From assembly GCA_051294905.1 (NCBI GenBank), contig CM119383.1, positions 12,028,001 to 12,092,000 of the forward strand: 64,000 nt of DNA, in the 5' to 3' direction. Below the pieces are notes generated by a model. That model searched no databases, was not told the origin of the DNA, and saw only the letters and a program-made list of their open reading frames with translations. A program made the position numbers and the translations under genes. Positions within the stretch are counted from its first letter, which is position 1; each line of letters opens with the position of its first letter. Of the stretch, positions 7,121-23,020 are shown one piece after another. This DNA is from Botryllus schlosseri (lineage: Eukaryota).

Positions 7121-9430
7121 CAGTGCTCTTCAACCGGGGTGGTCGTACACCCTAGGGTGTACCAAAATTTGCAAAGGGTGTACCACTCGGATGGGGTGTA
7201 CAGGGGTGTACCAGATCCGAATTACAATGACTCGATGGCTTGCTATCACAAAGGCAGGTTTACGGGTCAGTACAGGTTGACGCACAGGTTGATGAGCAAT
7301 ATGGTACGATGTTATCTCAAGTGTAATGCTGTACACCACTGTGATGTCATAAGCAAATATTAGCCGTCGGCAATAGACCAATGGTTCCGTTTGGTGTTGG
7401 CAAGTATGCAGTTAACAAACATGTGTTTAGCTCAGAGATCTCAAACTCAAATGTACTCGCGGGCCAATTTCCTTGTTTTTGAAGACGCCGCGGGCCGCAG
7501 CATAAAGGATTGGAAAATTCAATGCAGAATTTGAAAATAGGCCTTATTTGACGGGACCTTGCCGATAGGCATTCCACAAACATCGTGAAAATGTAATTTA
7601 CTATTGTACTATTCACGCTCGACACGAAAAAATCACATAATTTCCAATGTTTGAATAAATTGGTTTTGTTGCGGGCATAATTTTTTAGAATAATGAGTTA
7701 TAGACATCATGCAAGAGGGTGCATCATGAGTCGTAAAACTGTCGGGTTATAATATTTCAGCTAGTGGACCTTTTACGTGCTACAAATTTGATGTAGAATA
7801 TTTTGAAATCTACTGAAGATGTATCTGATATCATGGCATTTGAGCAGTGTAGCCTAATCCGGGTTTTGATATAGTCGTGATAAGTAGGCTATTGTTACTG
7901 TCCTTGCCAAAGTCAAATTATATCAGCGTTGGATTTTGCCTTCGCTTAATAATGGAACATATCAATAACAAATCTAAATATAGTCATTATTGACCATAGT
8001 AATAGCATTCTTTCTTAACGTTTTTAGAGATCGCACCTCTTGCGCTTCTAATAAGATTTCTAGCTTCTGTCCATTTTCAATACAATATTCCAAGTAACCG
8101 TTCCGAGTCGCAAGTCCTCTGATTTTAACGTTTGATCTAACTCAACTCGAGTGATTTATATTTAATCCTCTCGTCAATCCGAAATCGAGTAATTGTGCGA
8201 AAGGGCGGACCAAACCAAACCACAATTTTAGTCACAAATCATCAACGGGTCATGTTTTATCATCATGAACTAGAAATGTGACGTAATAGGTGATCTTCTA
8301 CCGCATGGTAGTGATGTGATAGTGAAGTTTGTTGAGATTTCAGTGATTTTTATAGTAGTTTTTGGGTTAACTTCAAGTTGTTATATCTAAAAAAGATATA
8401 TGTCACTTAAAGATACTGTCATATACTTGAAATTCCAAAATGCCATCGCGGGCCGCAAAAAATGCTCTCGCGGGCCGCGTGTTTGAGACCTCTGGTTTAG
8501 CTAGTCATTTGTCTTTTAGTGATTTTTGAGGAAACCGCCGCGATAGCTCAGACTTTTTGAATCTGCACTTCCTAGCCGACGGTAATAAATACCGCAATGC
8601 ACATAAATGAAGTGACGTAGCCACCCAGGGTCGAAACAGCTTCCATGTTGAAATCGAAACCCTTTTGTTTTAAAATGCCGATTGTATGTCCAATATTACG
8701 CCGTACATTTGCAATTTAGTATTTTGTTATTAGTGATGTAAATCAGCGACAACAGACTGTGTATAGCGGTATACGATCTGAGGTTACTGACATCTCTTGC
8801 AGCCCATGTTCTACTATCGACTGTGCGTGGTGTGGGGCAGGCCTGATACGCAGTAGGCTGGTGCGCCTGCTATCATCGCTGATCTGAATTACCGCTTCTG
8901 CAGCAGTAGCTTTACCTACTCTCTCCCCAATACTGTTATATTTAGGTTGATTATCGTTCGTAGTGTCATGCTGTTTTTGCTCTGACACGAAGTAAATTCC
9001 AATTTGCGTGGCGGGGGGCATAACTGGCTGCGAATAGACTCTGTGACCAAATACTATTTTATTCAAATCCAAATATTTTGACGGCAATAACTCCGCTTCT
9101 ACTGGTCGAAATTGAACCATATTTGAAGAACATCGTTTTTATAGACAACCTAATACTTTCATGGGGTGAACAGAAATATTTCAAATTTTTCGTTATTTAT
9201 TTTTATATAATAAATAGAAACTTTCTTATCCCGTAGCAAGGCGGCTACTGGTTGCAATTGAACCAAATTTGGTGTGTAGGCTTAAGTTAGGTAACCTAAC
9301 AATTTTATCAAGTAGCCAGTACGATTTGAGAAAAAAAGTCATTTTTGCAGACCCCTAATGAACAGGGGTGTACGAGTTTTGAGCAAACGTTAAAAGGGTG
9401 TACCACGTCGAAAAAGGTTGAAGAGCACTG
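7121..9430. mobile_element. Non-autonomous hAT-type element (outer)
   Basis: TIRs cagtgctcttcaacc / ggttgaagagcactg; perfect 8-bp TSD gaatagta; gggtgtac subterminal repeats at both ends. Confidence 0.92.
7433..8494. mobile_element. Non-autonomous hAT-type element (inner, related to 3037-4480)
   Basis: TIRs cagagatctcaaac / gtttgagacctctg; perfect 8-bp TSD gtttagct; gcgggcc subterminal motifs. Confidence 0.92.
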
Positions 9431-10415: not shown

Positions 10416-11018
10416 GATCATCATCATCATCATCATTGGTTTATTAGCAATTTTATCAGTTCAATACACCACAAATTTGCGATACAATGAAAAGACAGGA
10501 AGATGTCGAAGCGACAAGGAGTAGTCTATGGAATCTGACACCCACCTTGGCCTAGGCGATGTAAAGAGGAGGCATGCACACTGAATGAAAGTAAAGAAGA
10601 TAGTATAGAAGAAGAATGCGACAAGAAATAGGGCGGCATGTCATGGGAAGCGAGATCGATAGGTCAGTCGTGGTCCGGTAATCTTGAGGATGGACTGTAT
10701 TTATTTAGTAGTAATTGCTTGTATTTCGACTTGAATGTGGACATGCTCGTCGACTGTCGGATGGCCGGCGGGATACTGTTCCACACATCAGGTCCGGCAT
10801 ATTTGATGGAGCGATGATCTTTTCGGTCGATCATATGATATTTGGACGACGTGGACGCGCGTGTGTTGTACTTGTGCGCTTTGGATTCGGAGGTAAAGAA
10901 GTCATTGAAATATTCGGGGCAACGACCGCAGTGAAACTGATACATAAACTTGGCGATTTCTAGTTTCCGCATATCTTCTATGTTTAGGACGCCGAATCTC
11001 TTCAGCAGCGACTTATTG
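10416..11018 (-). mobile_element. CR1/L2-type LINE 3' fragment (ORF2 C-terminus + UTR)
   Basis: ORF 10664-10972 is identical to the C-terminal part of ORF 21309-21710; (atc)n tail. Confidence 0.88.
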
Positions 11019-12687: not shown

Positions 12688-15600
12688 CTAATATTCGAAC
12701 TGCATTATAACTTCTTCCCCTTGTTTATGCCCTTTGCTTTGAATATCAAATCCAATTCGCCTTCCAGTGCCTCATTGGTGCCACGGAGTCCTTCTATGAC
12801 ATCATAAGCCCAAAGGAAGTACTCTTGCACACGTTCTGCCGTCCAACCTTTAACAGACATGTACATGTAGGATTACAAGTGGTCACGTTTGTAGTAATAT
12901 GAATAAATTTTCGAATGGGCCACAAATATTTTAATCCTACCACTTAATTGGGGAACCACATTTTGAATTACCTTAAACCGGGGTAACATTGGACAATTCT
13001 CAACAATTCCGCTTTGTATCTTGGAATTGCTAGGGTGTAGGGGAGGCAAGTTTTGTGTTTTTTTGGAGTCATGGAGCAAAGATTAGAATTAACTAATCCA
13101 AAATCTTCATGGTCATAAATAAGTACCTTATTTTTGTAAATTATCCGTGTCCAAAGTTACCTGTGCATGTGGGGTAACTTTGGACAATGTAGTTTTTTGT
13201 ATGCCTTTACCCTCTATTGTTTATGAAACCTCGTAAATGAGGCTTATTTGGTAAGAGTTGATGAGAGCAGTGACTAAAACTGAAACAAAATAGTATATGT
13301 CTGGCCTATTGCATGATTTTTACCTAATCCCCCCCCCCCAAAAAAAAATAGGTAGTTTTTGAAGGCTAATGCCCCCTTATTCATCCCTTTACTCAATTTT
13401 CCCTCATGCCTTCACCAATTGGGACTTATAATAACGTATGGTGACAATGCGGTATCCCACTGGCAGTGTCAGCAATCGACAGCAAACATTAAGTATGTTA
13501 GCGTGATTTATTGCCAATTTCGAATATATTACTGTTCTAGAAAAGATATATTTTCCCTTTCCTATGTCCTCTGATGGATATATTTGTCGTAATTTACGAT
13601 ATCCCATATTCAGCAGGCGCATCTTTAGGAGTAGCCTATGTGATAAGTTTTTCAAGTAGCTTACACCCGATTACAATCTCTCAGCTCATTGCCTACCCAT
13701 TTTTTCATATTTTGGCAAACTCTTAATTTATTAACCTTCTCATTCCATTTTAAGAAGCCATCCGGCCGGTCATAAGGAATATAGTTGACGATACCCTTTG
13801 ACACAGATGAAGCAGCCACTTTCCAGAGCTCTAAATATCACATTTTTCACTGTCCAAAGTTGCCCCGTTCTGATAAAATTTGACGGGGTAACTTTGGACA
13901 TCACATTTTCTTGTATTGATCTAAGGGTGAGCCCACTGAGATTTTGGCCATGGATTAAGACTACTTAGAGGTATCTGCTGCCAAGTTTTGAATCTATGAA
14001 TCACATGCTATCTATGTTTGGCTGTAAGAAGTTTATTGGCCATCAATTTTGACGAAATTGACCCCCTCCATTAATTTATCGATGTTGGGTCAAGTTTATC
14101 TGGTAGTGAAATGAATCCACCTTTTATAGAGACTACTTGTAGTACTGTTGCCTCATGAAAAAGAATTGGACATCCAGCGGCAACTCTTTTTCATCGATAA
14201 CCATTTAAATCTTTTACTGCTTAGTGTCCAAAGTTACCCTTAAGTCCAAAGTTACCCCGGTTTACGGTACTCACCTTGAGGGGCCTCCCTACACAGATCT
14301 CTGAGATTGTAAAGTTTATCCGCAAGTTTCACGAGTTTGGCCTGACGGGACTTATGCGGAGCGTTCACAATTTGCAAGCGTTTCCTTTCCATCTTGGGAA
14401 GAGATTTATCGTCCGTCACTTCAGAAACTATGTCCCTGACATGAAAATATGCCAGTTGTTGATATTCCAATATCTTCATGCAACTCAATTACAATGTAGA
14501 TGAGTAACAAAGTCCTAGTTTTTCGAAATACTCAGGTAGATGTGGTCGAGTTCAGTTCAGCAGTGTAATTATGGCATTAGACCACTTCTAATTCAACCAT
14601 TTTTGAGGTCTAACTAATCACATTTTACATTTGCCAAGTACAATTGAATAGTATATTCATATTGAAATAAACCCGGATATTTTCGGCTGACACTCGTCAG
14701 GGGTAATCGTCAGCAACTAGTAGTGAATTGGAAAGAACATTGCCAAGTAGAATGCAGAGTCTGGAAAATCTGCATAACATTTATTAAATCTTCATGACAA
14801 CATGACATGCAGCCAGTGTAGCATGGTGTCAAAATATAATCCAGAAAATCACACGTATTTACAGCTCTATAGGTTGGTTCTGTTGGAGGCAACGGTGCAT
14901 CTTGTGTTACCAGCAATTGCACTATTGAAAGTATTTGAACAAGACATTTGGAGTACAGAACTTCAGAATAACGCGAAACAATAACTTAATATTGGTAATT
15001 TATTTGCTAAAAGCTTTTCGACTGACTCTCATCAGTAGCGAACGGCATTGATAGGGTGAATCAAATTCAAAAAGTAGTAACTATTTAGTCTGCTTGACGT
15101 AATAATAACAAAAACAAACAACTAGTGCAATGCCTCGTACAAATTAGCTCTTTTCAATGCTTTTGAGTAGTTTCGAAAAGTTTTAAAAATCATTACTTGA
15201 CCTTGTAATTAAATAGAATTACGACATCAATTTATATTTCATGTTCAGCAGTTCAATTTAATCGTTAATTCGGCCTATTTTTACCATATCTGCTTCAATC
15301 GACAGAGATATTTTAACACTAAATATATTTATGACACAGCCATTAGGGTCTGCCAACACCCATGCAAGAAGCACATTCAAAGGGCACAGTCAGCAATATG
15401 ATTTTCAGTATCAGTTTATCATTTCAAAACACCACAAAACTGCGATACAATGAAAAGATATGTGTCGAAACGACTTGGAGTTGTCTTTTAAATCAGACAC
15501 CCACCTTGGCCTAGGGAGGCGATGTAGAGACTAGGCATGTACAGTGAAAAGTAAAGCAAAGAATGTAAGAGGCAATCAGCATAATTGTATTCGACCACAT

Positions 15601-16626: not shown

Positions 16627-17442
16627 TTAGTCACCACTCTCTATCGTTACTTCAACCAATTGTTCAGCTAAATCATCATCAGTATCAGTACTCTCCGCCT
16701 CAGAGATGTCACCGGACGACGGTAACGCATGATTAGGATTACCGTGTTCGAGACTAAAATCAATGTCAAAAGGATCTCTGTCTTCCACAGCACTATCAAT
16801 ATTGTCTCTCTCAGTCTGCAGCCATTTCTGTTCCACACGCACGATCTCTTCCGAGGTATTGCAATTTTCGTAAACCGTAAACAAAGCCTCGTTCAAAGGA
16901 TAGAAATTCTCTCCCCATTTGAACGGCTTCAGTACCGAGTCAGCGCTTTCTTTCAAGCCGGCGATGTACAAGGCCGCCGCAAATGCTTCGGCGCAGGATA
17001 ATTTACAAGGCTTGCCGTAGTTGACAGGGTTGCACGCGACCAAATAAGGCAAGAGTCTTGGAAAACCGCCTCTCATTTTTGAGAACGGCGTATCTTCAAG
17101 ACGGGCCCACGAGCAATCTATCACGGCTGCGCCGTGTTGAGAAATAATATCCCTGTCTCCCGCGCTTACGTATTCCACGGCCATGGGGCTTAATATAATG
17201 CCGGGGAATCGCTGCTGAAGTCGCAGTATCCTAACGGCCCCTTTGCGTACGAGTTTACGACCTGAACACCTCTTTGGATCGCAATGGCCCAAGTCCCACA
17301 TCGCTAGCGGGCAAGATATCGTAAAATTATTTGCGTCGGCCGGTGCGGCGTCATGTAGTTCCGCTGCTTCGCGTGCTAGATCTTTCGTAACGGCTCGGTT
17401 CCTACGTCCGGACTTGCCCTGGCTACCTTTGTGACGCGGCAT
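16627..17442 (-). CDS. TSR3: 18S rRNA aminocarboxypropyltransferase, single-exon CDS
   Basis: LAMWDLGHCDPKRCSGRKL, AVIDCSWARL, LPYLVACNPVNYGKPCKLSCAEA motifs; acidic tail. Confidence 0.96.
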   Translation of the reverse strand: MPRHKGSQGKSGRRNRAVTKDLAREAAELHDAAPADANNFTISCPLAMWDLGHCDPKRCSGRKLVRKGAVRILRLQQRFPGIILSPMAVEYVSAGDRDIISQHGAAVIDCSWARLEDTPFSKMRGGFPRLLPYLVACNPVNYGKPCKLSCAEAFAAALYIAGLKESADSVLKPFKWGENFYPLNEALFTVYENCNTSEEIVRVEQKWLQTERDNIDSAVEDRDPFDIDFSLEHGNPNHALPSSGDISEAESTDTDDDLAEQLVEVTIESGD

Positions 17443-18077
17443 AGTTAAGGCGCCCTTGCTATGAAAATCTATTACGAGAAGACAGTTTCGAGTAAACTTA
17501 GTTTCTGTTGAAAGAGCGGATGCATAATTATATAGTTTGTAGAAGATACAAAGAAAACACTAATTTGGAACTCATCAAAATCACATGTTTGATTAACGTT
17601 ACGTTCATGGACATCAATGGTAGAGTAAATTACATGCTCACGGCGTTACAATTCCACCGTGCCAATTTTGTACACAAAAGAATTGTTTATATCAATCGCC
17701 ACATAATTGCTAGAAGACAATTTCATTAACTGCTCAACTGCTCAAGTGTACAGAATGAGGCATTCACACACTGCTAAGTGATGAAGGCTGTAAGCGTAAA
17801 ATATAATGTGACAGGTCTCTTACCAAAATCTCACAAAATTTGAGATAATCAAAATCAAGGTTTACAAAATTCAACATTTACATATACGAGTCAATATATC
17901 ATTGATGGAACATAGATATGTGGCCACTGTACAGTGAAGTAAACTGTTATCGGTATTTTGAAGACTTTTGTGGCATCTTGAAAACAATAGTTTTTTTCAA
18001 GTCCCTCCCGCCACACAAAATCAACATCTACAGCCATATACAAAAATATCCACACAGAGCAGGTTAACTAAAAAGCA

Positions 18078-18608
18078 TCAATTCAGCATCATAGCCTTGA
18101 TCATGTGTTCCCGCAAGCGCGCATTTGTCGGTATAGAAAAGGCAATCTGCGCAAGAGTATATTTCCTTTCCAACAGTTCCTTCAGCTCTCTACACGCAAC
18201 TCCCTTCTCTAATATATAGACCATTAGTTCTTCGGGTTTCAGCATCGCCCCACCACCGCCAGCGATGGTGGTGCCCCTGTTGTTATAAGTTGATGTTCCT
18301 CCGATAGTTGCCTGTGTAAAGTTTCCTCCAGTAATCGTAGTGCTATCATGATGAGCGCCTTTGTCGTAGATTTTCATTCTCTCGTTGAATGTGACATCGC
18401 CGTCATTACCGAGAGCTGCTTGGGCGATGTAATTTCCCTGGATATTGAATTCAGAAGAGCCCTGTGTTATCTTTGCGTACTCCTCGGGCAGGGTAATTGG
18501 TCCGGTTTCTGCACTCGCTTCGTTGTCAATGACTACTTCCATCTCTTCTTTCGTTTCCGTGTGTTTCGTGACAAATCCAGACGTATCATTCTCGAGGGTG
18601 TTAGACAT
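18078..18608 (-). CDS. Uncharacterised 176-aa protein A (two Gly/Asn-rich beta-repeat rungs + C-terminal helical domain)
   Basis: ATG-started ORF with an acceptor-like tract upstream; its C-terminal about 120 aa align with the neighbouring ORF, which indicates protein-level conservation. Confidence 0.75.
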   Translation of the reverse strand: MSNTLENDTSGFVTKHTETKEEMEVVIDNEASAETGPITLPEEYAKITQGSSEFNIQGNYIAQAALGNDGDVTFNERMKIYDKGAHHDSTTITGGNFTQATIGGTSTYNNRGTTIAGGGGAMLKPEELMVYILEKGVACRELKELLERKYTLAQIAFSIPTNARLREHMIKAMMLN

Positions 18609-19180
18609 GACTATGAATGTTAATTATGACAACTCTCTAAACGGAAAAAAATAAAAATTCAGAGAAATTAATAGAATTTGGAAGGGTAAGTAGCATAGGC
18701 AGGCTCCATGTCGAGCTAAAACCCAAAACTAGACCCTTTAATGAAGTAGATTATGAGTGCGATACATTTCATATATACTTGACTTCAATCACAAACAAAC
18801 GACTCAGCTGTTGACAGTTCTTGATAGGGTTTCCAGCATAATGCTGAGAATAGTTCATAAAATTTTCAATGTTATAATTATATTGACGATCCATTCAATA
18901 GCCTAAATCATGGAACTTAATGTATATAATAGAATTTCTTCCATAAATCTGTGACTATTCATAATATTCATTGAATTGAACATAGAGCTAATCCTATAAT
19001 CGGCATAAAATGAAATTGTTCACAAAGTGTACATATAAATAATAGTATGCCAAGCAGACTGTTCGTCTATCAACACATTAACAGTGGATATAATAATAAT
19101 AAAAGTAACCTAGACTCTTTCAAGGATAATATGTAGCGATGGTTGTGGAAGCAATGTAGCCTATGACTCGCATCATAGCT

Positions 19181-19440
19181 TAAGGTTATCATACGTCCTC
19201 ATTTGTCCTCTTTTTTGAGATTTTGTCCTCTATTTTGAGAATTTTGGTTAAATAGAGGGCAAAATTCGACTGAGATACAGTATATCAGCATTGAAGTAAC
19301 GCTCCGGCGTTGTTTTTTTCAGTCAACCGACCGCGAAGTGGGATAAAGTTACCATATTTTCAGGATTTTCCTCCGATATTGCAAGTCTGAAGATTTTGAA
19401 AAAGTGTCCTTTTATCAGATTTCCAAAATATGGCAGCCCT
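19181..19440. mobile_element. MITE of the tagggttaccata...tatggtaaccct family (hAT Blackjack-like)
   Basis: Termini taaggttatcatacgtcctc / aaaatatggcagccct; related to 58948-59293. Confidence 0.65.
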
Positions 19441-19577
19441 CTATAGCTCACCGCTGTTACATAATTAACCAGGTCGATTCAGCTTGGCTTTAAGATAGGC
19501 TGAAATTGATTCACAATAGAGCATCAGGATGGGAAGTTGGATAGGCCTATTAAAGTAATGTCCTGGTACTCTGTAGT

Positions 19578-20153
19578 TTATCCGCACAGAAGCACAGTCA
19601 CCATCCGATTCATTCTTTCTCTATCATCCGGAATTGCAAAGGCAATGTTTGCTAGCGAGTATCCTTTTTGAAGTAGTTGAGTCACATCAGGAAGTTCCAT
19701 TCCTTTGCACAGTATGTCAAGCAATAATTGCTCAGGTGATATGCCGATTCCAGCGTTACCCGCTCCGATGACACAGTTGTCGTTATTCACTGTCGCCTCC
19801 CCACCAATATTCGCTTGCGGAAAATCACCCCCTGTAACTTTGATAGCGGTCTTGTGTGCGCCTTCGCCATAAACACGGCTACTCTGATTCAAAGTAACAG
19901 GCCCCTTGCTTCCAATTATAGCAACTCCGATTCGGCTCTCAGACATATTTATATCTCCATTCTGGGGTATATATCCGGTCTTGGTTTTAGGAATAGCTGC
20001 CGGCGATGCTTTGGTGGAGAGCGGTGGTAAATTTCCAAGTTGACGTTGTTTTTCTAATATTTTTTGAGCGTTGGCCACCATTCTATTTGCGTTCGCAACC
20101 CGATCATCTATCTTCTTTTGCTCTGCCGCACTAAGTCCATAACTCCGTGGCAT
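19578..20153 (-). CDS. Uncharacterised 191-aa protein B, paralog of protein A
   Basis: In-frame ATG at 20151-20153 (MPRSYG...); shares GAH, TGGxFxQAxIGG, PExL and YxLAxIAFxIP with protein A. Confidence 0.75.
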   Translation of the reverse strand: MPRSYGLSAAEQKKIDDRVANANRMVANAQKILEKQRQLGNLPPLSTKASPAAIPKTKTGYIPQNGDINMSESRIGVAIIGSKGPVTLNQSSRVYGEGAHKTAIKVTGGDFPQANIGGEATVNNDNCVIGAGNAGIGISPEQLLLDILCKGMELPDVTQLLQKGYSLANIAFAIPDDRERMNRMVTVLLCG

Positions 20154-20329
20154 GGTCAGTATTCGGCGTGCATGAATCAAATATTGATGACAATATCTAC
20201 AAGAAAATAATGCATCGTTAAATTGGGTGCATTATCAGATACCAGATATGGGGCGATTACCCCGTCAATGTAATCGATTACGGTCGCAATTAGATTACGA
20301 TTACGATTACAGTCTTATAGTCTCTGCAT

Positions 20330-20490
20330 TACTTTTCATTCAGTGTGCATGCCTCTTATTTACTTTGCCTAGGCTAAGGTGGGTGTCTGATCTTAATGGC
20401 TATTCCAAACACCTTCCTATCTTTTCACTGTATCGCAGTTTTGTGATGTTTTGAAACGATGAAAATATTAATAAACCTGATTGATTGATT
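20330..20490 (+). mobile_element. LINE 3' end, sister subfamily with (GATT)n tail
   Basis: cctaggctaaggtgggtgtctga...taataaacctgattgattgatt; same as 23395-23585. Confidence 0.75.
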
Positions 20491-21064
20491 GATCGAGGAA
20501 AATCTCGCGGTAGTTGATTACAATTACGAGTGAGTTGACTCGTCTCAAAATGTGCAATGACTCGAGATCGAGATGAATCGTGATTCAAAGGTATCTATAT
20601 AATCCCAACACTGCTGTCACGAGGCAAATCCGACATCATGATACACCAAACTATACCTTATTCTGTTTAGCCAATATTCCTAAATAGCGAATATCCCGAT
20701 ACGCGATACCGATGATACATACCATACGCACATTCGTACACACATACTTCCGTTATACATAACCAGATAACCTCAATACACAATTGGCATGTGCCACTGC
20801 CACTGCTACACGACACAAACATTACATTTCTTGAATAACATGGTATACACGTAGGACGATTTTTCTTCATCTAAGTGCTAGTGTCTGCAATCCTATTGAA
20901 AATAATAGGAAGACGGAACATCGATAGTCAGCATCGATGTGACTTCCTCTTTCTGTTTCTTCCTGATTTACAAGCCAGCGTCAAAGGAGTCCGGATATTT
21001 CATTATCCGGATCTCGCCACAGAGTCCGAATCACTGGGCTGTATAAACCGGGAATAATGAAACA

Positions 21065-23020
21065 ATCATCATCATCATCATTGGTTTATTAGCAATTTTA
21101 TGAGTTCAATACACCACAAAAATGCGATACAATGAAAAGACAGGATGATGTCGAAGCGACAAGGAGTAGTCTATGGAATCTGACACCCACCTTGGCCTAG
21201 GCGATGTAAAGAGGAGGCATGCACACTGAATGAAAGTAGAGAAGATAGTATAGAAGAAGAATGCGACAAGAAATAGGGCGGCATGTCATGGGAAGCGATA
21301 TCGATAGGTCAGTCGTGGTCCGGTAATCTTGAGGATGGACTGTATTTATTTAGTAGTAATTGCTTGTATTTCGACTTGAATGTGGACATGCTCGTCGACT
21401 GTCGGATGGCCGGCGGGATACTGTTCCACACATCAGGTCCGGCATATTTGATGGAGCGATGATCTTTTCGGTCGATCATATGATATTTGGACGACGTGGA
21501 CGCGCGTGTGTTGTACTTGTGCGCTTTTGATTCAGAGGTAAAGAAGTCATTGAAATATTCGGGGCAACGACCGCAGTGAAACTGATACATAAACTTGGCG
21601 ATTTCTAGTTTCCGCATATCTTCTATGTTTAGGACGCCGAATCTCTTCAGCAGCGACTTATTGGATGGGCAGCCAGGCCCCTTTGGGGCCCTAGCTATGA
21701 TTCGGAGCACTTTATGCTGTAGTTTCTGCAGTGGCTTGAGTGCAGTTTTACTGGCAGCCCCCCATCAGAGGATGCCATAATGTAACTTCGATTGGATTAA
21801 GGATTTAAAGAGTATCAGAAGAACCCATGCTGGCATGAAGCGCCCAAGGCTGTAGAACAGGCCGCACTTCGGTGAGCGAGATAGTGTAATGGTTATGCGT
21901 CCGGCTTCTCGAGCGGTAGGTCGTGGGTTCGATTCCCGGCCGGGTCATACCAGAGACTCGAAAAATGGTATCCGCAGCTATCCTGCTAGGCGCTCAGCAA
22001 TCACGGATAGCATGGAGGAGAAAAAAAAACGGGGGCGCAGACTAGATGACCTCATGGGGCCGTATCGCAACTCCGTCGCCAAAGCATCTCGATGCTGCAG
22101 GCGAGAAAGAATATCATATCTCTCTCTCTCTCTCTCTCTAGGGACTGAATATGACTCTTCCAGGACATGTTCGAGTCCAGTAAAACTCCGAGATATTTGG
22201 CATTATCTGTGTTGGAATGCGGGCTGACCAGCGATATTAACGGTCAGGTTATTTTTTGAATTAACTGTCAGCAATTGCGATTTCGAGGCGTTTATGCAAA
22301 GGTTGTTCTGGGCCGTCCACTCATGGACTTTGGGCATTTGGTCACCAGTCAGGGCATCCAGCTCTGCCGTCGAAGATGCGGAAGAGAGGAGGTGAGTATC
22401 ATCAGCGAACAGTGTGGTGTTCAATGAGGAGGTTTCAAAAATGTCGTTGACATATAAGGTGAAAAGGACCGGTCCAAGTACTGAGCCCTGGGGCACACCA
22501 CACGTCACCGGGTGAGGAGAGGACAAGGTATCTGAGATCGCAACCATTTGTTGGCGTCCAGTGAGGTAACTTTTCATGAGCTCAAGTTGTGGGCCCCGAA
22601 GTCCGTAACGCGCCAATTTCGAGATGAGAATTTTATGATCTACGCAGTCAAACGCTTTTTTTAGGTCGAGAAAAATGCTACATCCCACATTTCGCCTCTC
22701 TGAGATATCATAGTACTGTTCGGCCACTGTTAGGAGGGCATGAGCGGTTTGGTGTTTGTTTCGGAAGCCAAATTGTTGAGGGGAAATGATAGACATTTTG
22801 GCGAGGAATGAGGACAGGCGGGAGAGGAGCAACTTTTCGAATACAATCCCGATGCATGGGAGAATGGATATCGGACGGTAGTTGGTGACATTAGTTCTAT
22901 CCCCAGCTTTGTGTACAGGGACTACTCTGGCTTTTTTTTAGATAGCTTGGGTAGACTCCATTTTCTATCATGAAGTTGAAAAAATGGGCCATGTATTGAC
23001 CGATATGCAGGCTTATCATT
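21065..23020 (-). mobile_element. 5'-truncated CR1/L2-clade LINE with decayed reverse transcriptase
   Basis: NYRPISILP, QFGFR, FLDLKKAFDCVDH, GVPQGSVLGP, LFADDT, KYLGV motifs; frameshift near 22205, in-frame TGA near 21770; split by a SINE; (gat)n tail. Confidence 0.93.
21876..22140 (+). mobile_element. tRNA-derived SINE
   Basis: A box tagtgtaatgg, B box ggttcgattcc, non-tRNA body and (ct)n tail; near-identical copy at 32116-32377. Confidence 0.9.

Follow-up and report, generated by a model that had tools for sequence, protein, structure and literature searches.

We found that two neighboring genes, here called A and B, in a 64,000-nucleotide window of the Botryllus schlosseri genome (assembly GCA_051294905.1, contig CM119383.1, positions 12,028,001 to 12,092,000 of the forward strand) belong to a family of small proteins that is spread across the ascidians. 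Coordinates given below without a contig name count from the first letter of this window. Both genes lie on the minus strand and are transcribed, and each encodes a module of two related repeats followed by a helical C-terminal domain. Neither the family nor its two modules, the double motif and the four-helix domain, have been described before. One copy of the repeat motif also occurs in a predicted exon of an IAP (inhibitor of apoptosis protein) gene of the same genome. Our best reading, which we hold tentatively and rate somewhat short of an even chance, is that the family consists of small adaptors that would be connected to an IAP ligase through their double strand motif, acting as a homotypic interaction module.

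A and B are expressed members of an ascidian family

The two coding sequences are as follows:
18078..18608, minus strand: gene A coding sequence, 176 amino acids plus stop, single coding exon (from the list of open reading frames)
19578..20153, minus strand: gene B coding sequence, 191 amino acids plus stop, single coding exon (from the same list, counted from the ATG)

These are the two open reading frames that the initial annotation had pointed out. Their description as single-exon genes holds for the coding sequences and not for the mRNAs, which additionally carry a trans-spliced leader, in the case of B only probably. The mechanical open reading frame of gene B opens at TTG 20180, upstream of the ATG. 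A and B align over 144 amino acids with 34% identity (BLASTP, E 1e-30), so that the C-terminal part which they had been said to share is real and extends over about 144 residues instead of 120. Their N-termini are unrelated, as had also been noted: by residue count, residues 1-50 are acidic in A (net charge about -8) and basic in B (net charge about +5). The sequences show neither a signal peptide nor a membrane segment.

A word-based search returned only three relatives, all from Logan assemblies, and a profile search of 1.84 billion representatives returned 28 matches, about 25 of which have the full architecture. All named relatives are entered as 'uncharacterized protein' of ascidians, and they come from Styela clava (three loci), Ciona intestinalis (two loci), C. 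savignyi, Phallusia mammillata, and Clavelina lepadiformis. With about 25 relatives across ascidian orders and three members in this genome, A and B are not the orphans that they had been taken for. The full-length family profile also matched the bacterial repeat protein P0022 (RTX-like calcium-binding repeats, 7 stretches, INLTGNEFGQAIIGNAGAN) and the TPR/CHAT protein P0030; we judged both matches to be compositional or convergent. A match to phage Gp38 in 2 of 25 members (E 0.004, at 17 bits where the cut-off is 25) was set aside as one of Gly/Asn/Thr-rich composition. BHF (Botryllus histocompatibility factor), a small disordered ascidian allorecognition protein with three N-terminal cysteines and multiple disordered regions (PMC12065747), was set apart by description alone, since that description does not fit A or B.

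The third member in the genome, paralog C, lies on another contig:
G000:C4 about 8230539-8238364, plus strand: paralog C, multi-exon (L017 4040-4207, 4984-5157, and 8702-8839; L030 3201-3365)

The conserved parts of paralog C are distributed over four exons (repeat 1; linker and repeat 2; hinge and helices 1-2; helices 3-4), and therefore the intron-less coding sequences of A and B are probably derived. Paralog C is nearest to the Styela clava LOC120329665/LOC120330353 type. In the tree, A groups with P0001, P0002, P0004, and Styela clava LOC120338966 in a supported clade, and B groups with P0003, P0005, and P0007 in a supported clade apart from that of A. This separation indicates that the A/B duplication is old.

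Expression was followed in the bulk RNA-seq run X23, of which about 6% was read and which covers positions 17504-20263. The depth is about 30-50x over gene A, about 10-23x over gene B, and about 2-6x over the neighboring gene TSR3. Both A and B are thus expressed; a lack of expression would have spoken against the original proposal. Relatives of gene A at 78% and 54% identity both come from one other sample, and a relative of gene B from another species (48% identity), found on contigs of three runs, opens with MPRGN at the equivalent ATG. Compared with other individuals, gene A shows 4 synonymous and 5 conservative non-synonymous differences, which are too few to gauge selection.

The shared module is a double repeat with a fixed register

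The repeats and the linker occupy these positions:
18381..18455, minus strand: A repeat 1, residues 52-76, SEFNIQGNYIAQAALGNDGDVTFNE
18348..18380, minus strand: A conserved linker, residues 77-87, RMKIYDKGAHH; family consensus VYxKGA
18273..18347, minus strand: A repeat 2, residues 88-112, DSTTITGGNFTQATIGGTSTYNNRG
19884..19958, minus strand: B repeat 1, residues 66-90
19776..19850, minus strand: B repeat 2, residues 102-126

The four repeat strings quoted in the initial annotation are all found in A and B, as are the linker containing GAH, the Gly-rich hinge, and the helical tail. When the profiles of repeat 1 and repeat 2 from 24 family members are compared with each other, they match over 27 columns (hhalign, probability 91%, E 1.2e-6), indicating that the repeats of about 22 amino acids are related and that the pseudo-repeat is genuine and no reading artefact. 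Of the 25 members, which represent different ascidian orders, 24 keep the two repeats exactly 36 residues apart, with no insertions or deletions between them. If the conserved Gly, which is present in repeat 1 of 19 and in repeat 2 of 23 of the 24 members, is taken as position 0, both repeats have hydrophobic residues at -13, -11, -6, -1, and +5, a further Gly at -9, and Asn/Gln at -12 and -4. The whole module is 60 residues long, with the core I-x-G-G-x-F/I-x-Q/N-x-x-I-G-G/N and a conserved 15-residue linker; it is rich in Gly, Asn, Gln, and Thr and has few large hydrophobic residues.

AlphaFold2, run on the 25-sequence alignment, gives the repeats of both A and B a per-residue confidence (pLDDT) of only 30-60 versus about 95 for the tail, as expected for a segment that folds only on binding. 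What weak structure it does predict is an antiparallel beta-hairpin across the linker in both proteins (pLDDT about 59 in A). Among PDB sequences, the full family profile and the single-repeat profile are both without any match, the latter therefore also without one to a solved amyloid or beta-helix chain. Matches to a transposon protein or to a known soluble beta-helix, either of which would have spoken against the original proposal, were not found.

A single copy of the motif lies in an IAP gene

We searched a 25-position single-repeat profile against the six-frame translation of the genome (495 Mb). The profile recovers the six repeats of A, B, and C, and its next match, at E 0.035, is TNSTIRITGGNFGQTVIGS on contig C3; genome-wide, the repeat profiles yield only 8-11 motif candidates. 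The gene around this match is:
G000:C3 about 29799289-29806138, plus strand: IAP gene with one motif copy (L028 6690-7889, L023 1334-1606, L029 3430-3639)

The 15-residue core of the C3 motif, IRITGGNFGQTVIGS, is identical to A repeat 2 at 9 of 15 positions, as close as B repeat 2 is, and its sequence is single-copy in the genome. The predicted exon that contains the motif in frame is bounded by a strong acceptor (tgttttgcgtatttcAG) and by the donor GGTGAG. It is preceded on the same strand by a BIR exon (PF00653, E 1.6e-9, above cut-off) and a UBA-like exon reading ...ARQMGFTEDQIRTAQ... (Pfam UBA_6, E 0.31), which by eye continues to ...TADLLIESIL in the motif exon; we take this continuation to resemble the UBA of cIAP/XIAP. 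Downstream on the same strand is an IAP-type RING exon (zf-C3HC4_3, PF13920, E 1.7e-12, above cut-off). With a BIR and a C-terminal IAP-type RING on either side of the predicted motif exon, the predicted gene conforms to the definition of an IAP.

Because the predicted motif exon is placed between the BIR/UBA-like exons and the RING exon, an IAP appears to contain one copy of the motif, at about the place that the CARD has in the cIAPs of vertebrates. In the C3 gene itself, a CARD was looked for between the UBA-like and RING exons and not found. The motif resembles the CARD of cIAP1/2, a homotypic death-fold domain, in its place between a UBA-like region and a RING, but it is a strand motif of 15-18 residues and not a six-helix bundle. 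The RHIM protein RIPK1 and the cRHIM protein IMD are ubiquitinated by IAPs, in vertebrates and in flies, and by this analogy the association of the motif with an IAP is suggestive of a link to cell-death signaling.

A further marginal match of the motif, SEISGGNFPNAVIGTS (E about 0.4; L025 = G000:C12:1137687-1137722, plus strand), lies in a frame that looks non-coding and is probably a chance match or a decayed fragment.

The C-terminal domain is predicted to have four helices

The predicted helical parts of the two proteins are:
18081..18242, minus strand: A C-terminal four-helix domain, residues 123-176, AlphaFold2 pLDDT 87-96
19581..19736, minus strand: B C-terminal four-helix domain, residues 140-191, AlphaFold2 pLDDT 95-97
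20040..20129, minus strand: B N-terminal basic helix, residues 9-38, AlphaFold2 pLDDT about 95

The tail of A and B is predicted by AlphaFold2 to form four helices over 52 residues at a pLDDT of about 95, and in A these helices span residues 125-134, 139-147, 152-158, and 163-175. The initial annotation had proposed a UBA-like three-helix bundle. The tail is like a UBA domain in being small and helical, with a conserved L-x-K-G loop after the first helix; however, the UBA domain is a compact three-helix bundle of about 40 residues. Pfam UBA has no match among the 25 members (hmmscan, E<=1), the Cbl-b UBA is reached by Foldseek only at E 6.7, and the structure containing hHR23A (6xqi) has a Z of 3.0, below unrelated helical proteins. 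We therefore do not retain the UBA assignment.

The best structural match of the tail is an mTERF repeat (Z 4.4), and no fold match is significant. Fold searches with the A and B models in the PDB (Foldseek, VIA wide), AFDB clusters, and Swiss-Prot gave as their sole significant match the family's own Phallusia member (E 6.9e-7), the ESM Atlas gave no usable match, and no family in Pfam or NCBIfam is over threshold for any of the 25 members. Since the fold and Pfam searches found no significant match, the tail would be a new small helical domain as far as these tools reach. The N-terminus of B, which had been described as basic and coiled, is predicted as one long helix over residues 9-38.

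A possible role as adaptors tied to an IAP ligase

In the reading that we prefer, A and B would be anciently separated paralogs within a family of small intracellular proteins that extends across the ascidians. Its proteins would be made of three parts, namely an N-terminus that varies (acidic in A, a basic helix in B), the 60-residue double-motif module, and the novel four-helix C-terminal domain. The double motif would lack structure as long as the monomer is free, and beta-strand addition would pair it with the copies of this motif in paralogs and in the IAP-type E3 ubiquitin ligase, and the four-helix tail and the variable N-terminus would supply the output. Such motif-mediated binding and linkage to an IAP may place the family in a cell death or immunity pathway.

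Several points weigh against this reading. The match in the IAP gene is marginal, both in its E value of 0.035 and in its length of 15-18 residues. A four-copy complex prediction for A residues 48-122 scores 0.01, which speaks neither for nor against binding. We found no paper on any accession or locus name of the family, and no member has a known function. Finally, a small folded beta domain, overlooked by AlphaFold because the alignment has only 25 sequences, would account equally well for the strong conservation of the linker and for the invariable spacing.

This last point belongs to the alternative that survives best, in which the 60-residue module is an ordinary small hairpin-based beta domain with a fixed surface that may bind a ligand or a partner, the repeat is a trace of its origin, and the IAP match is due to chance or convergence. 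The invariant spacing and the linker conserved across ascidian orders are what such a domain would show, the same hairpin is predicted in A and B, and the IAP match, at E 0.035 only, has a similarly marginal counterpart on C12 in sequence that looks non-coding. However, the module stays at a pLDDT of 30-60 although the same alignment brings the tail to 95, its Gly/Asn/Gln/Thr-rich composition leaves it short of the large hydrophobic residues that a core would need, and a chance match would rarely fall, as the IAP match does, in the reading frame of what looks like a real exon of a gene for cell death. We regard this alternative as unlikely, while still giving it appreciable weight.

The motif compared with RHIM and HET-s motifs

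The initial annotation had called the repeats a HET-s/RHIM-like amyloid motif. The corresponding reading is that the module is a true amyloid, in which the two repeats would be two stacked beta-solenoid rungs like those of HET-s, and a single-motif partner (such as the IAP) or a paralog would template it, with prion-like propagation. HET-s-related motifs (HRAM) have two 21-amino-acid repeats separated by a loop of 6-18 amino acids whose sequence is unconserved, with an invariant Gly at position 19, hydrophobic residues at positions 5, 8, 10, 16, and 18, and an aromatic/di-glycine segment after repeat 2 (PMC4518210). The A/B family is similar in that two imperfect repeats of about 21-22 amino acids, in a 36-residue register, are joined by a 15-residue connector, and the repeats end in hydrophobic-x-hydrophobic-Gly-(Asn/Gly). 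The repeat offset of HET-s itself is also 36 residues. Further likenesses are the aromatic and Gly-Gly segment after repeat 2, the conserved Gly with hydrophobic residues at HRAM positions 18, 16, and 8, and a repeat region that is predicted to be unstructured in the monomer, with low AlphaFold confidence, and is fused to a helical domain. The amyloid reading is also favored by the one motif copy in another signaling protein, the IAP, and by the report that tunicates appear to lack RHIMs (Kajava et al., PMC4262963), a gap that the motif could fill.

The differences from HRAM are of several kinds. Hydrophobic residues at -6 and -13 from the conserved Gly replace those at -9 and -14 (HRAM positions 10 and 5), and position -9 is a Gly. 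Unlike the unconserved loop of HRAM, the connector VYxKGA is conserved and keeps a single length in 24 of 25 members. The helical domain is C-terminal, 52 residues long, and not HeLo, and the host is an animal. No Pfam domain is present in any of the 25 members and no NLR-type partner with the motif was found; the repeat profile has no match within 1.5 kb of 12 NACHT exons, and the repeat profiles find only the 8-11 candidates genome-wide. In addition, the weak structure predicted by AlphaFold is the antiparallel hairpin over the linker and not a parallel stacking, and, as noted above, no solved amyloid or beta-helix chain is matched.

The genome also contains a large expansion of NACHT (NLR) genes, with 224 first-look candidates, of which 94 were scored, all at E<=1e-10; many of them are clustered on contigs C1, C10, and C16.

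The core tetrad of RHIMs is (V/I)-Q-(V/I/L/C)-G (PMC9444067). A regular-expression search for this tetrad found it in 0 of the 25 family members, in which the tetrads ending at the conserved Gly are AALG, AIIG, ATIG, and ANIG. RHIM has no match among the 25 members in hmmscan (E<=1), and neither Pfam RHIM (PF12721) nor Pfam HET-s_218-289 (PF11558), searched over the whole genome at E<=10, matches A, B, or C. The family resembles the RHIMs of RIPK1, RIPK3, ZBP1, and TRIF and the insect cRHIMs of the IMD pathway in that a short strand motif, rich in Gly, Asn, and Gln and in some cases duplicated (ZBP1), stands in non-globular sequence, but its Gln/Asn is at -4 from the Gly and not at -2, and it is without a kinase, death domain, Z-alpha, or TIR context. 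The absence of the tetrad, the silence of both Pfam models, and the partial fit to the HRAM pattern thus argue that, as judged from sequence, membership in RHIM and HET-s fails, and we consider the true amyloid improbable.

Somewhat less probable again is an extended form of the same idea, an ascidian two-rung beta-solenoid amyloid-like motif in which A, B, and C, as adaptors or effectors, would co-polymerise with the single-rung copy of the IAP E3 that replaces the CARD. Animals would then have an independent counterpart of HET-s/NWD2 and of RIPK1/RIPK3.

Trans-splicing, operon-like packing, and conserved gene order

The untranslated regions (UTRs) and the neighboring genes are as follows:
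18609..18638, minus strand: gene A 5' UTR, with the trans-splice acceptor ttAG at 18638-18637
17561..18077, minus strand: gene A 3' UTR, approximate, from RNA depth and contig ends at 17561 and 17689
20154..20198, minus strand: gene B 5' UTR, with the putative trans-splice acceptor cttgtAG at 20198-20197
18751..19577, minus strand: gene B 3' UTR, approximate, from depth, contig ends, and sequence
16627..17442, minus strand: TSR3 (ribosome biogenesis), Pfam Ribo_biogen_C E 5e-51 plus Fer4_RLI
14252-14488, minus strand: HDDC3/MESH1-like HD-domain exon, downstream of TSR3, identified by eye

The gene A mRNA is trans-spliced 30 nt before the ATG. At this point, 18638, 37 RNA reads have a loose 5' end, which in the minus-strand reading is ...ACATGGGG-ATTGGAGTATTTGGTTGTATTA, joined to the AG after a polypyrimidine tract; ACATGGG is the end of a SMART template-switch oligo. 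The leader 20-mer TGGAGTATTTGGTTGTATTA has 528 occurrences dispersed over the genome versus 0 for a reversed control, and for this reason we infer that ATTGGAGTATTTGGTTGTATTA(AG) is the spliced leader. An in-frame TAA at 18624-18626 separates the acceptor from the ATG at 18608; therefore A starts at this ATG and the 176-amino-acid protein is complete. For gene B, contigs of two runs stop exactly at the A of cttgtAG (20198), and one contig has 26 unaligned letters past this point. Gene B is thus likely to be processed by the same trans-splicing as A. Its 5' UTR holds a 5-codon upstream open reading frame, an ATTAAA at 18737-18742 is near its 3' end, and a high-copy repeat lies within its 3' UTR at about 19160-19343.

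The spliced-leader sequence is also found contiguous in DNA with a 5'-UTR-like stretch and an open reading frame (MADKKDILKRLDSL...) at L010 = G000:C3:14625029-14625058, in the minus-strand reading, an arrangement that suggests a retrocopy of a trans-spliced mRNA.

B, A, and TSR3 are arranged head to tail with gaps of about 75-250 nt, a spacing that looks like operon-like packing: B is upstream, its 3' end is about 75-110 nt from the acceptor of A, and about 120-250 nt separate the end of the 3' UTR of A from the start codon of TSR3 downstream. Styela clava likewise has its A-type gene as a single coding exon directly upstream of TSR3, with an HD-domain gene next after TSR3, so the order A-TSR3-HD-domain exon of the window is the same in both species.

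High-copy repeats lie around the genes, and the contig word depth reaches thousands to tens of thousands at 19160-19343, 20264-20631, and 21000-21900. An open reading frame, MRKLEIAKFMYQFHCGRCPEYFNDFF..., occurs at 10664-10972 and 21309-21710 and again in L029 at 7717-8248, and is probably part of a mobile element. That A and B are themselves non-functional, whether chance open reading frames, transposon-derived, or viral remnants, could be argued from these flanking repeats and from the lack of a Pfam family, but it is hardly credible for genes that are both transcribed and processed, have about 25 relatives of the same architecture in at least five ascidian species, keep their microsynteny with TSR3 in Styela clava, number only three copies in the genome, and match transposon and phage families only below threshold.

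Significance of the family

Regulated cell death depends centrally, in vertebrates, insects, fungi, and bacteria alike, on short strand motifs that assemble signaling complexes (RHIM, cRHIM, and HET-s-type). Tunicates are the sister group of vertebrates and have been reported to be without such motifs (PMC4262963), and a conserved and expressed family with a double motif is hence of interest. About 25 'uncharacterized' ascidian proteins gain names and boundaries. Even if the motif is not amyloid, two undescribed conserved modules, the double motif and the four-helix domain, are defined, and the motif copy in an IAP ligase is a testable candidate for the way in which an ascidian pathway may be wired without death-fold or RHIM adaptors.

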